Part shown: positions 32,365 through 60,931 of the stretch, one piece after another
How positions within the stretch are numbered: the stretch's first letter is position 1
How the letters are laid out: each line of letters starts with the position of its first letter
Source: Macrostomum lignano
Taxonomy: Eukaryota
NCBI GenBank assembly: GCA_002269645.1
Contig: NIVC01000487.1
Span: 1-64,000 of the forward strand
Reading direction: 5' to 3'
DNA: 64,000 bases
Translations under genes and position numbers: made by a program
Notes under the pieces: generated by a model
What the model was told of the DNA's origin: nothing
Database searches by the model: none
Seen by the model: the letters and a program-made list of their open reading frames with translations, nothing else

Positions 32365-35300
32365 ATGGTGAGTCTTAAATTAATATGCATAGTGAATTTA
32401 AAACCAAATGCAACTCCTGCGATCTTAGCAATCAAGTTTGTTCCCGACCTGTATATACATGAAGGGCAGTCCATGACCGAGATGTTTGTCTATGGTACAA
32501 CCCCACATGCACATGTAATTCCATCCGTCCAGCATACTAAAAGTGAATGCGCGTGTGACACGTTTGTTTGAAAGCGAACCCTTGGACTGATCTACTCCAT
32601 TTTTGTACCATTTAATTGGAATTTGATCATAGATTGTATGATTCATTTTTCTTTGCTTGGGTTAATGAAAAGTGCCTCTAAAAGGTCCTTAATTTAATTT
32701 CCTTTATGTCCATTTGCTTTGCGTCTATTGTTAACCGAGCTTTGCCATTATTCTATGGCCTACCCGAGCCTTAATGATTGTCCAAGGAACGCCATTATTC
32801 CAGGCTTCCAACGCGCATTTCAACCATAGACAATACAGTTTATTTAACAGAAGTGACGATAAATACACTAGGAAATTGAGAATATGCTCGTACATACATG
32901 TAAATATAAAACATGCGAATAACCTGGCCCTGCCTTAGAAAACAGACCCTTTAAAGAGTCTTTAGTCTAGGAAAATCATAGTCTATGGTCGACCGTATAC
33001 CCTCTAACTCTTCCCTTTAGTCTTTCTATCCAAGCTCTAAAATTGTCTATGGCCAATCCTTTGAGAAAATTCTAGGCGGTACGCAATGAAAACATCTATG
33101 CGGTACGGAATGGAATGGTCGGTACGCAATGATCGCGGGACTCGGGTAGGCCATAGAATAATGAGCGTTTTTGACGAGTGGCAGTCGATCATTATTCAAG
33201 GCTAATACATACTACACAATCTACCATTGATACTTGAAGACTGCCCTGGAATTGTAACTTTATTCGAGACAACAGCAGAGCTAATTGCGGCTGTTTCTCT
33301 TGCTGAAGGGGCCTTAGGTGCATATGACATAGTTTCAACACTCATACATCTCATACTAAATGTCAATCATGAAATTTATCAGCGAGAGATGCTACTAATA
33401 TCGAAATGCTTCGTTTGATTGAGAGAGGACACACCCCTACGAGGTACTCAGCCATCTGTAATTACTCTTCGTCTCCTTTACGATCGGCATAGGATGCGTT
33501 ATGAATCCCTGCGTATTTTTGACCCCGCAATCAATCGCGATCCCTTGCACTTCTGATGCATCAAGTCAGCACTGATGGACACGTCATGCAGTCAATGTGG
33601 GTGACTATAACTGCTTTTTTCATGTGCAACTCTATTTGAATTCCCAGTTCGGCCACATTCACTTCTGCGCCAAACAGATGGTGCTGGAGAAATTCGACGA
33701 GAAGACCTGGGCTAAAATCCTGTGAGTTTCAAAACAGTGAGATCGTTGCTTTCTAGAGATGATAGCACTCCGCAATCACTGCTGCTACTCAACTGTAACC
33801 TGTGAATGCCCATTGCAGCCTCACGGCAGAACTCGACGACTACGAAGATTTCCAACTTTTAAAAGGCTACCCGGATCGGAAGACTTTTCTGCTGATTGAG
33901 ACCATCTCTAAAGTTGTTGGTGAGCCAATGCGCTGATTTGTAGGCGAAATTGTATGAATACCAACTCAAGTCTTTTGATGTACCGTCACTCTTCCCTGTG
34001 GGTCTGTGATGTACCGTCACTCTTCCCTGCGGGTCTGTGATGTACCGTCACTCTTCCCTGCGGGTCTGTGATGTACCGTCACTCTTCCCTGTGGGTCTGT
34101 GATGTACCGTCACTCTTCCCTGCGGGTCTGTGATGTACCGTCACTCTTCCCTGTGGGTCTGTGATGTACCGTCACTCTTCCCTGTGGGTCTTTGATGTAC
34201 CGTCACTCTTCCCTGCAGGTCTGTGATGTACTGTCACTCTTCCCTGCGGGTCTGTGATGTACTGTCACTCTTCCCTGCGGGTCTGTGATGCAAGGACTAC
34301 TTAACAACTCACTAACATCAGAGGACCCACAGGGAAGAGTGACGGTACATCAAGACACAAGACAAGAGAGACAGTCAAGGACTACTTATCAACTCAGGAC
34401 GCTACACTCGCGAATGGTAGAAATTCTAGAAAAAGCCCCTTGCTTTAGCTGTCTATGGCAATGAAGCCTTTTCACTAACATTCTTTCATATTCTCAATGC
34501 TGGTTCAGACCAGCACTGCTGGTTTGTAGTAATAATTTGTTTCGTCTAAAATCTTGATAAATAGCAACACTCTTTTTCATCAAAATGCCAATGAAGTGCT
34601 GCATCCCTGGATGCAGAAGCAATCATAAGAGCGGTGAAAAATGCACTGTTTTTGGCTTTCCAAAGGAAGAAGCTGAAGCTGAGGCATGGCTCAATGCGTT
34701 GCCTGTGCAAGTTAAGGTAATTTATGTAGCCTTTTGAACCTAATTTTTCGTTTCTACTATAAAGATACTTATATTAACTGAATTGTGATGATCATTCCAT
34801 TCTATCTGTAGAAGGCTAGCATCTACACGGGAGTCTGCAAAAATCACTCGCCTGAAAATGCACCACTGAAACGAATTAACCACCATACACGCCCCATCGA
34901 CCCACCCTCAATCTTTAAAGATTTTTCATTGACTTCCCTGCGTCAGACTGTCTCAAGTAAGTATGAATGGTTGTGTACTTTGTTTACTTACTAAGTTGTA
35001 TCAGCCTGTTTCAAATATTTTAGGACGCTCTAGAGATGCTGGTCGGCGAGGCGTGCTGTTAGTCGACAGAGCTAGGGCCCCTGATGAATGCTGTCGACAG
35101 AATTGTCTCGTGGGCTCTATTCATTACGTCAGCTTTGAGCCTGGATTTTGTTACCTCCGGAGGCTGGATTTTTCAATGTCAGGATTTGCGAGTCGATTTT
35201 TTGCTCATTCATGAGCGCACTGTTGAGTCCTTCGTTCGAGTTAAGAGCGAATTCACAGTCTTGGCGTATCGGCGCGATGTGCTTGTAAAGATTTCCATGA

Positions 35301-59700: not shown

Positions 59701-60931
59701 GGGACTGTCCGAGCCCAGCTACTTGTCTGGGCTGAGGCCGAAGCAGACAGACAAAGATTCGCAAAGACAAAAGGCCACCCAATGATCTAATTAAGGTTTT
59801 GTTCATCGGACAGGTTGGCATCCCAGGGAAAATAGCTATTTCGCTGATCAGGCCGAGCTTCGTGTTCGAAGCCGAGTCAATCCCGGAAATGAATGCCCAC
59901 GGCTCTCCTTATGTTACAAAAATGCTGGAATGAAATGACACAGGCCAGTCATGGCTAATGATATCCGTCGATACTTCGCCGCGTGGCAACCAGGAGTCAG
60001 CAGTTTCAATTACAGCCTGACTCGGCCTCAGGTGTCCGAGTTTGGCTGGATGTATTTTTAGCTTATGTACAATTGTCGGATGTAGAGATTTGATCAGTAG
60101 TTTTTCAGCGAAATTTAATTAAATAGACTAATTCAATAGCCGCGAGTTGAAGCTCATAATGCTCTCCAAAATTACCGCTTTGCATTCAGTGGTTGGTTAG
60201 ACTGGCGCTCTTTAGTATTGGCCTGTATTCAATTTTTAACAACAGGAATATTCATTGTCTTGGTTGTCCTGGAGCTCATGTGTCCAGATATTCATTGCAT
60301 TGAGATACTCAACTATTGCCTTATGAGACTGAGCGATATTTCTCAGGTTCCTGTGCGATCCAGTGCGATCCAGTGCGATCCTGTGCGATCCTGTGCGATC
60401 CTGTGCGATCTTGTGCGATCCTGTGCGATTCAGTGCGATCCAGTGCGATCCTGTGCGATCCAGTGCGATCCTGTGCGATCCTGTGCGATCCTGTGCGATC
60501 CAGTGCGATCCTGTGCGATCTTGTGCGATCCTGTGCGATCCAGTGCGATCCTGTGCGATCCTGTGCGATCCTGTGCAATCCTTACTGCTGGTCACATTGT
60601 GTGTGCAGAGTGAGTTAGCTAATTAAGTACAAATACACTGGAAAATTCCAGGCTAGTCAAGGACAGTCACGTGACCGAGCCGAGAGGCAAAATCTACGTG
60701 AAGGGCAAAGGCGAGATGAAGACCTACTTCCTGCTGGGCAAGGCCGGCTCCGACTGCCACGTTGCCATGGAAACGGCGGCAGAGTGGAAGAATGTGCAGA
60801 CCTGGGACGAGAGCAAGCCGCCAGCGGCCTCGCCCGCCGAGGCTGCCAACGCGCCGCCGGCAAAGCAGAACGGCATGAGCCGGAGCGCCCCGGGCCAGAT
60901 CATTGAAACCCGAGTCTGCCGGCTGCTGTAG
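50736..60931 (+). CDS. Soluble guanylate cyclase, beta/atypical type, copy 2, 11 exons, 663 aa
   Basis: Exons 50736-50738 (ATG), 52307-52380, 52474-52574, 53527-53710, 55405-55478, 56156-56659, 57644-57818, 58649-58943, 59106-59252, 59368-59522 and 60652-60931; total 1992 nt. Same intron positions and phases as copy 1. Contains YSSTR; ends CRLL. Confidence 0.93.
50747..51808. repeat. (TCTA)n / GATA microsatellite, about 1.06 kb, intron 1 of copy 2
   Basis: Directly visible, roughly 265 units. Confidence 0.98.
52625..53483. repeat. 43-bp minisatellite, intron 3 of copy 2
   Basis: Unit CAGGTAGAGAGGAGCCCAGTAAACACCCTACTGCACTGGGCAA, about 20 near-identical copies. Confidence 0.97.
53820..55305. 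repeat. 15-bp minisatellite, intron 4 of copy 2 (CATATCTCCGACACT/GT)
   Basis: About 100 copies. Confidence 0.97.
55590..55880 (+). mobile_element. tRNA-derived CORE-type SINE
   Basis: B-box GGTTCGATTCC at 55631-55641, CORE-like GTGTCCTTAAGCAAGACACTTAAC...CAGCTGTAAAATGGG, and a (TTA)n tail. Confidence 0.75.
56826..57095 (+). mobile_element. SINE sharing a central domain with family A; interrupted by a LINE
   Basis: AAGGCAC...GTGTACATGCCTGACGAT...AAAGTCAGGGCCGCTGTACA matches 21849-21899, but the head and tail differ. Confidence 0.6.
57096..57559 (-). mobile_element. 5'-truncated LOA/I-type LINE with a 12-bp target-site duplication
   Basis: Reads [25 protein letters not shown]...CPFC...[10 protein letters not shown] and ends in CTGCAGCTAAGTCAAGTCAA. 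TSD GGCTGTGACGTC at 57084-57095 and 57560-57571. Confidence 0.9.
57960..58525. repeat. 17-bp minisatellite, intron 7 of copy 2 (CAGTCAAATGTCACTGG)
   Basis: Directly visible. Confidence 0.95.
59523..59730. repeat. Exon-10-end/donor-derived repeat, shorter and more decayed than in copy 1
   Basis: GTCCGAGCCCA...TGAGCTGGGGG...GGGCCGGG units homologous to 47299-47940. Confidence 0.85.
60350..60580. repeat. 10-bp repeat (GCGATCCTGT), intron 10 of copy 2
   Basis: Directly visible. Confidence 0.95.

Follow-up and report, generated by a model that had tools for sequence, protein, structure and literature searches.

A mosaic of identical and diverged exon parts in two tandem soluble guanylate cyclase genes of Macrostomum lignano and its probable origin by gene conversion

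How can two neighbouring genes be identical in one part of an exon and deeply diverged in the next? The question is raised by a stretch of 64,000 nucleotides (nt) of the flatworm Macrostomum lignano (assembly GCA_002269645.1, contig NIVC01000487.1, positions 1 to 64,000 of the forward strand), here called the window. Two beta-2-like soluble guanylate cyclase genes, A and then B, lie in it head to tail on the + strand. An earlier note, made from the sequence alone, ascribed their mosaic to recurrent interlocus gene conversion, with selection sparing the distal heme pocket. Silent-site identity, saturated flanks, tract edges inside exons and two age classes uphold the recurrent conversion; the selective sparing found no support. 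A and B are very probably an old, lineage-specific tandem pair in which two or more epochs of short-tract interlocus gene conversion preceded the multiplication of the locus.

Structure of the two genes

Gene models were assembled from self-BLAST, open frames and base-level alignments, with AG/GT at every junction. Both genes have ten coding exons (E2-E11) with identical phases, and the coding spans are 33648-49152 in A and 52307-60931 in B. Exon lengths are equal save for in-frame indels in E6, E9 and E11. The first coding exons lie about 19 kb apart on the same strand, and the proteins are 79% identical (524 of 665 alignment columns). The genes and the exons of these models, in positions of the window, are as follows.

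Gene A, 32365..49152, + strand: beta-2-like soluble guanylate cyclase of 661 amino acids (GenBank BOX15_Mlig004886g5, Mlig004886.g5)
Gene B, 50736..60931, + strand: unannotated tandem paralogue of A, 663 amino acids
E2, A 33648-33721, B 52307-52380, + strand: coding exon, 80% A/B identity
E3, A 33819-33919, B 52474-52574, + strand: coding exon, 62% A/B identity
E4, A 38858-39041, B 53527-53710, + strand: coding exon
E5, A 39245-39318, B 55405-55478, + strand: coding exon, 60% A/B identity, holds the Y-x-S-x-R motif
E6, A 40202-40702, B 56156-56659, + strand: coding exon
E7, A 41779-41953, B 57644-57818, + strand: coding exon
E8, A 42849-43143, B 58649-58943, + strand: coding exon
E9, A 43594-43746, B 59106-59252, + strand: coding exon
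E10, A 47144-47298, B 59368-59522, + strand: coding exon
E11, A 48882-49152, B 60652-60931, + strand: coding exon

The mosaic

Several exons divide into parts of very different A/B identity, listed here in positions of A with those of B in brackets.

E4a (57 nt), 38858-38914, + strand: 56% identity
Tract 1, 38915..39048 (B 53584-53717), + strand: exon 4 codons 79-120 (E4b, 127 nt, 100% identity) plus 7 nt of donor; coding part 127/127
E6a (172 nt), 40202-40373, + strand: 67% identity
Tract 2 (E6b, 277 nt), 40374..40650 (B 56328-56604), + strand: exon 6 codons 203-295, linker and PAS; 99.6% identity
E6c (52 nt), 40651-40702, + strand: 38% identity
Tract 3 (E7, 175 nt), 41779..41953 (B 57644-57818), + strand: whole exon 7, codons 313-371; 98.3% identity
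E8a, 5' part of exon 8, + strand: 92% identity
E8b (43 nt), 42873-42915, + strand: 65% identity
Tract 4 (E8c, 147 nt), 42916..43062 (B 58716-58862), + strand: exon 8 codons 395-444, end of the coiled coil and start of the cyclase domain; 99.3% identity
E8d, 43063-43143 (B 58863-58943), + strand: 81.5% identity, intermediate-age class
E9a, 43594-43721 (B 59106-59233), + strand: 92% identity, intermediate-age class
E10 with flanks, 47121-47310 (B 59345-59534), + strand: 96% identity, intermediate-age class
E11a, 48882-49066 (B 60652-60836), + strand: 88% identity, intermediate-age class
Old unconverted H-NOX coding parts (E2, E3, E4a, E5, E6a), 33648..40373, + strand: synonymous difference per site (pS) 0.5-1.1

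Exact comparison returned the identical tracts first noted in this DNA: 134 of 134 nt for tract 1, 276 of 277 for tract 2 and 146 of 147 for tract 4. The low amino acid identity of exon 3 (18/33) and the divergence of the 5' third of exon 4, whose first 57 nt make up E4a, were likewise confirmed. Exons 7 and 10 are near-identical, as had been claimed (172/175 and 149/155). They had also been said to share their acceptor flanks, which is true of exon 10 (19/20) and not of exon 7, where the upstream matches are 2/10 and 3/20. The acceptor flank of exon 9 is also common to A and B (17/20).

The identities of the parts confirm that tract edges lie inside exons, and the parts of exons adjoining the tracts are only 38-67% identical. 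At E4 and E7 identity does not extend more than a few nt past the splice sites; for tract 3 it ends 1-4 nt from both splice sites of the exon. Two diverged parts, E6c and E8b, lie outside the H-NOX span. After E11a there is an unalignable tail and then a CaaX box.

Intron interiors do not align between the genes, in agreement with the earlier note. The longest alignable block is 440 base pairs (bp), amid kilobases of non-homologous intron. The three small exceptions are a minisatellite whose array starts within exon 10 of either gene, a non-colinear 94-nt element and a weak match of 51 nt at 80% identity (43340-43390 vs 56936-56984).

Divergence classes and tests of chance

If the duplicates were evenly old, silent divergence should be uniform along the gene, and a sliding-window check of this had been proposed. 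It was run with the Nei-Gojobori method in 15-codon windows and pS is clearly non-uniform: it lies at 0.5-1.1 in codons 16-75 and 121-180, falls to 0.00 in the tracts and is 0.1-0.4 in codons 450-630. Synonymous divergence (dS) is 0.028 in the tracts, 0.29 in exons 8d-11 and 1.26 in the diverged parts (1.70 for H-NOX alone, which is saturated). The dS classes of 0.03 and 0.29 point to at least two conversion epochs. Four-fold sites differ at 3/123 in the tracts, 13/83 in the intermediate class and 22/43 in the diverged parts; Fisher tests on these classes, which were chosen post hoc, give P < 1e-3 for every pair and P = 1e-12 for tracts vs diverged parts.

A GENECONV-type permutation test, also suggested beforehand, was restricted to codons that encode an identical amino acid in A and B. 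The three longest runs free of synonymous change sum to 139 codons, a total reached in 0 of 100,000 shuffles, and the longest single run has P = 0.006. An unsupervised change-point fit puts edges at 38915, 39041/39245, 40374 and 40650.

A and B agree at 99-100% over the PAS tract (codons 203-295), silent sites included, yet the tract has only 24% identity to 34 other family members. Since this segment is so poorly conserved in the family, purifying selection cannot explain its identity between the two genes. The GC content at third codon positions (GC3) is 0.85 in the tracts vs 0.68-0.74 in the old parts, a difference that is confounded by domain composition; the high value in the tracts is consistent with GC-biased conversion.

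Copies of the locus and age of the exchange

The whole locus, including an upstream MCM-family gene, is also present on contigs NIVC01001347.1 (L002) and NIVC01002124.1 (L003), with introns 96-99% identical to those of the window. The assembly, Mlig_3_7 (GCA_002269645.1), was made from PacBio reads with Canu, and Pilon then used Illumina reads from DNA and RNA-seq to polish it (PMC5730564). It is highly redundant, and line DV1 has extra large chromosomes (PMC5730564). The three contigs reflect the hidden polyploidy and extra chromosomes of this line. Between loci, exons differ at 1-5 sites in A and, over the covered parts, at 1-5 sites in B. The same mosaic of identical and diverged parts is found in L002 and L003, together with private single-base variants.

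The A/B differences inside tracts are common to all loci, with exceptions at 56487 and 41902, which places conversion before the split of the loci. At 56487 the B gene of L003 has the A base, for which micro-conversion and one mutation in the common ancestor of the B genes of the window and L002 are equally good explanations. At 41902 a G is private to A of the window and both other A copies have the B base, which makes it a new mutation in that copy and not an A/B difference. With at least two age classes it is fair to call the exchange recurrent; a claim that it is ongoing finds no support in the three loci.

Over the diverged H-NOX columns A and B share 56% identity, against at most 40% with any other protein, the other M. 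lignano cyclases P0072 and P0101 included. Since A and B are mutually closest even there, the divergence is an old one between A and B and not the import of a third gene. A search with residues 1-240 of B, which take in the H-NOX domain and the beginning of PAS, returned nothing, not even A, which shares identical stretches of about 40 residues; this reflects the limit of the word index and not absence.

Proposed course of events

A tandem duplication would first have produced A and B, whose dS is now saturated. An older round of conversion in exons 8d-11, the 3' half of the gene (dS about 0.3), would then have been followed by the four recent tracts of 127-277 bp in exons 4, 6, 7 and 8 (dS about 0.03). 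Finally, the locus would have multiplied in the neopolyploid genome, leaving exon differences of about 0.1-0.3%. Introns seem to have been completely renewed by minisatellites and transposon insertions, which left each exon as an island of homology. Tracts would then end at splice sites or at in-exon stretches that had already diverged or carried indels. The three shortest exons and neighbouring exon parts, which make up most of H-NOX, would have escaped conversion, most likely for lack of homology.

The analysis shows the mosaic with its statistical significance and age classes, its occurrence on three contigs and the family assignment; from these we infer both the recombination mechanism and the homology-length barrier. 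The three exons without a homogenised stretch are the three shortest (74, 74 and 101 nt), and each of the seven exons of 147 nt or longer has 125 nt or more in one stretch with no less than 88% identity. The efficiency of homologous recombination depends on the length of homology. Since the introns have no homology, the short exons would offer too little of it for strand invasion. This barrier would explain most of the spared pattern without selection and is the simpler explanation.

Several points weigh against this account or narrow it. The evidence for the mosaic is the consensus of three contigs of one assembly; polishing with Pilon could have erased at most a few true differences inside tracts. 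Comparison of the three contigs shows no conversion event after their split. The protein search gave no Macrostomum orthologue beyond the M. lignano copies. The exon-length argument is post hoc and uses ten exons, and exon length gives no account of E6a, whose 172 nt are contiguous with a converted tract and stayed diverged.

Three other routes to the mosaic were rejected. Conversion templated by complementary DNA or RNA does not fit the retention of all introns, several edges inside exons and the co-homogenisation of the exon 9 and 10 flanks and a minisatellite. A third paralogue as donor is ruled out by the identities per segment, and unequal crossing-over as sole cause would require many nested events to give at least eight alternating segments.

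Fate of the sensor domain

The earlier note held that conversion spares the distal heme pocket and that selection keeps the ligand-discriminating N-termini of A and B different; in the full form of this model, selection would remove converted alleles of the distal pocket. The exon parts were mapped on the AlphaFold model of the annotated A protein (mean predicted local distance difference test score, pLDDT, of 80; model numbering + 11), which predicts the following elements.

alpha-D, residues 63-80
alpha-E, residues 84-88
alpha-F with His105, residues 94-111
beta1-beta2 with Y-x-S-x-R, residues 119-135
alpha-G, residues 141-154
beta3-beta4, residues 158-190
disordered linker, residues 192-215
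disordered PAS loop, residues 298-306
coiled-coil helix, residues 353-402

The exon 4 tract begins at codon 79 (position 236 of the coding sequence), at the end of alpha-D, as had been claimed, and covers alpha-E and alpha-F with His105. Both edges of the exon 6 tract are in predicted disordered regions (pLDDT < 50), and one of these regions contains an indel, as would be expected if sequence differences that were already present set the ends of the tract. The modules said to be homogenised (His helix, PAS, coiled coil and catalytic core) mostly are, with the exception of coiled-coil residues 380-394 and the PAS loop at 296-311, which are diverged.

Selection for different ligand discrimination would explain why H-NOX is the main region to escape all epochs while PAS, most of the coiled coil and the cyclase domain are homogenised, and it would cover E6a, for which exon length alone does not account. 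Some H-NOX positions that are conserved in the family and possibly line the heme pocket also differ between A and B: 70 (Y/F), 78 (A/L, Cys in the family), 134 (N/S, Tyr in the family) and 143 (I/V). The first three of these may be relevant to the pocket. However, the spared part is not confined to the distal pocket: codons 121-202, with the beta-sheet, the Y-x-S-x-R strands, alpha-G, beta3-beta4 and the rest of the proximal subdomain, are equally diverged, and so is a segment of the coiled coil. The canonical distal-pocket equivalents (I5, A9, F74 and I/V143) are identical or conservative. For the diverged H-NOX codons the ratio of nonsynonymous to synonymous divergence (dN/dS) is about 0.2, and differences concentrate at less conserved family positions (mean conservation 0.47 vs 0.61); this is ordinary purifying selection, and nothing hints at adaptive divergence. 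At conserved positions the residue of the family is found 5 times in A and 4 times in B, and from the alignment the two genes look equally constrained. The escape also coincides exactly with the three shortest exons. Selection on ligand specificity is therefore an unlikely cause of the pattern.

A related proposal is that A and B form a sensor pair, possibly a heterodimer, in which conversion keeps the interfaces of PAS, coiled coil and catalytic domain interchangeable and selection holds two heme tunings apart. This is doubtful; if true, the conversion map would mark the boundary of a functional module in an atypical guanylate cyclase.

Other explanations of the mosaic

The earlier note had asked whether the identical tracts are artefacts of collapse or polishing. 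Cross-correction of PacBio reads, or Pilon fed with mis-mapped short reads of the paralogue, might be suspected in a redundant neopolyploid genome that was assembled by Canu and polished with both DNA and RNA-seq reads (PMC5730564), and no transcript or protein entry supports gene B independently. However, a longest block of 440 bp in kilobases of unrelated intron makes long-read overlap between A and B implausible. At the tract edges identity rises from about 60% to 100% over a few bases, which polishing with short reads cannot produce; such reads cannot be mis-placed across flanks of 56-67% identity. Three separately assembled contigs have the same mosaic with private variants, the A side is also present in the older ML2 annotation (protein P0122), and the graded intermediate class of 88-96% is unlike a collapse. 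An artefact is therefore very improbable.

The mosaic is symmetric as to which class is original, and the polarity could in principle be reversed: a young duplication, with the diverged segments derived from a distant third paralogue or from localised hypermutation. This is very hard to credit, since the introns of A and B are unalignable against the 96-99% intron identity among the three locus copies, the diverged segments are closer between A and B than to any other protein (56% vs at most 40%), and three divergence classes require more than one event in any case.

It is exceedingly improbable that no exchange took place and that nucleotide constraint (codon usage, splicing enhancers or RNA structure) or mutational cold spots shaped an evenly old duplicate: the tracts are coding sequence of a conserved enzyme with high GC3, but their four-fold sites are frozen (3/123) and become saturated a few codons away (22/43), the most perfect tract (PAS) is the least conserved segment of the family (24%), and the exon 9 and 10 acceptor flanks and the intron 10 minisatellite are common to both genes, so homogenisation reaches non-coding DNA.

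Family assignment and annotation

Pfam domains HNOB, HNOBA and Guanylate_cyc are found in both A and B, with HNOB scores of 1e-36 and 3e-38. Both proteins align over their full length with solved beta-1 subunits, and their best matches outside Macrostomum are annotated as beta-2-like (42-44% identity). In the family alignment the proximal His105 is invariant, and Y133, S135 and R137 of Y-x-S-x-R are present in A and B. On the same chain D431, D475, E471, C543 and N550 are invariant and R554 nearly so. By analogy with class III cyclases, we take D431 and D475 to bind metal and E471 and C543 to specify guanine/GTP. A C-terminal CaaX prenylation box (CHLL in A, CRLL in B) matches the family consensus C-x-L-L, in which C658 is nearly invariant. 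Six near-invariant family residues are altered in both proteins: Y2F, G82N, Y83F, D84A, L131V and H132T. Since the residue set is on one chain and is joined by the C-x-L-L box, A and B are each probably an atypical, beta-2-like, homodimer-competent and prenylated cyclase, judging from sequence.

The model of gene A matches BOX15_Mlig004886g5 (P0001) and g1 at 100% over 650 amino acids in the protein search. The contig that encodes g5, NIVC01000487.1, agrees with the window at every base over 23678-59152. The GenBank model begins at the internal Met12 and is thus without the conserved H-NOX N-terminus. The protein of gene B was not found among the deposited M. lignano proteins, either by similarity search or by exact look-up from Met12. 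Its exons are also intact, over the parts covered, in the two other contigs that bear the locus. Gene B therefore appears to be an intact but unannotated second cyclase gene.

E2 starts at codon 2 (Phe) in phase 0, directly after AG, in both A (33648) and B (52307), with no start codon in the exon. Candidate cis starts are ATG|GTGAGT at 32365-32367 (A) and ATG|GTGAGA at 50736-50738 (B). The 35-nt spliced leader of M. lignano has the 3' end ...TTGCATG (PMC8629364). Since this leader ends in ATG, the initiator Met may be donated by trans-splicing, or it may come from an upstream cis exon. The trans-splice acceptor motif [T/C]TNCAG (PMC8629364) is not matched exactly by the E2 acceptors (TCCCAG in A, CGACAG in B).

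Comparison with known systems

Interlocus conversion is known from human HBG1/HBG2, OPN1LW/OPN1MW, RHD/RHCE and CYP21A2/CYP21A1P. As in these tandem cases, A and B are neighbours in the same orientation, and their tracts, hundreds of bp long, agree at silent sites; they also have a mosaic of tract ages, higher GC3 in converted parts and divergent regions that persist between tracts. They differ from these cases in that their introns have no homology, and no tract spans more than one exon, with ends at splice sites. Conversion limited by selection has reportedly been treated in theory by Innan and by Teshima & Innan. Unlike the opsin and RH genes, for which selection against conversion is documented, the tests on A and B gave no support for selection. 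A literature search found no report of a conversion mosaic in soluble guanylate cyclases or in Macrostomum.

Gucy1b2 is a marker of mouse olfactory neurons responsive to low oxygen (PMC5196021). Like vertebrate GUCY1B2 and the invertebrate beta-2-like cyclases, A and B have the order H-NOX, HNOBA (PAS and coiled coil) and cyclase, and carry His105, Y-x-S-x-R, both Asp, Glu and Cys on one chain and C-x-L-L. They differ from these proteins in being only 42-44% identical to the nearest members outside Macrostomum and in their six changed near-invariant residues. Drosophila Gyc-89Da and Gyc-89Db are neighbouring paralogues of atypical cyclases. This pair resembles A and B in being lineage-specific, atypical and close in the genome, which is a lead only. 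To our knowledge, no conversion mosaic has been described for Gyc-89Da and Gyc-89Db.

The mosaic is a clean but ordinary case of gene conversion, a well-known process that will not surprise a specialist. It offers no new mechanism and no evidence that selection protects ligand specificity. Its value is as a very clean example of exon-confined, short-tract conversion in three dated layers, in a neopolyploid flatworm with fast-evolving introns. Trees or dS dating of A and B will mislead unless they are done per segment. Gene B also adds a second, apparently intact gas-sensor cyclase to the M. lignano gene set.

Repeats and neighbouring features

The minisatellite of intron 10 has a unit of 67-68 nt that starts inside exon 10 and consists in part of the last 19 nt of the exon and the GTGAGC donor.

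Intron 10 minisatellite, A 47280-47880, B 59504-59717, + strand: tandem repeat, 67-68 nt unit

Its copies are potential tandem 5' splice sites, eight in A and three in B. Nearly every intron of A and B (31601-60582) has its own large micro- or minisatellite array, unrelated between the genes, such as (CTTGTGTG)n over 3 kb at 43783-46836 and (CTAT)n over 1 kb at 50747-51808, with units of 16-43 nt in introns elsewhere.

The 94-nt element lies upstream of E5 in A (39070-39163) and downstream of E5 in B (55789-55882), and the two copies are 92.5% identical. Each locus has these two copies only, and each copy is 100% conserved in the two other contigs. The element has a moderately stable predicted hairpin fold (z = -1.5 and -4.1). 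An Rfam scan of the whole window gave no family match, the element included. Read as an alternative to exon 5, it keeps the frame in A but meets a stop codon in B. It may be regulatory, or it may be a small mobile element or the scar of a rearrangement.

Fragments of a THAP-domain, P-element-like transposase open reading frame are found in intron 3 of A (34561-37125) and also in L002 at about 99% identity. The MCM-family helicase gene upstream of gene A lies on the same strand at about 25036-30747 and encodes 782 amino acids.

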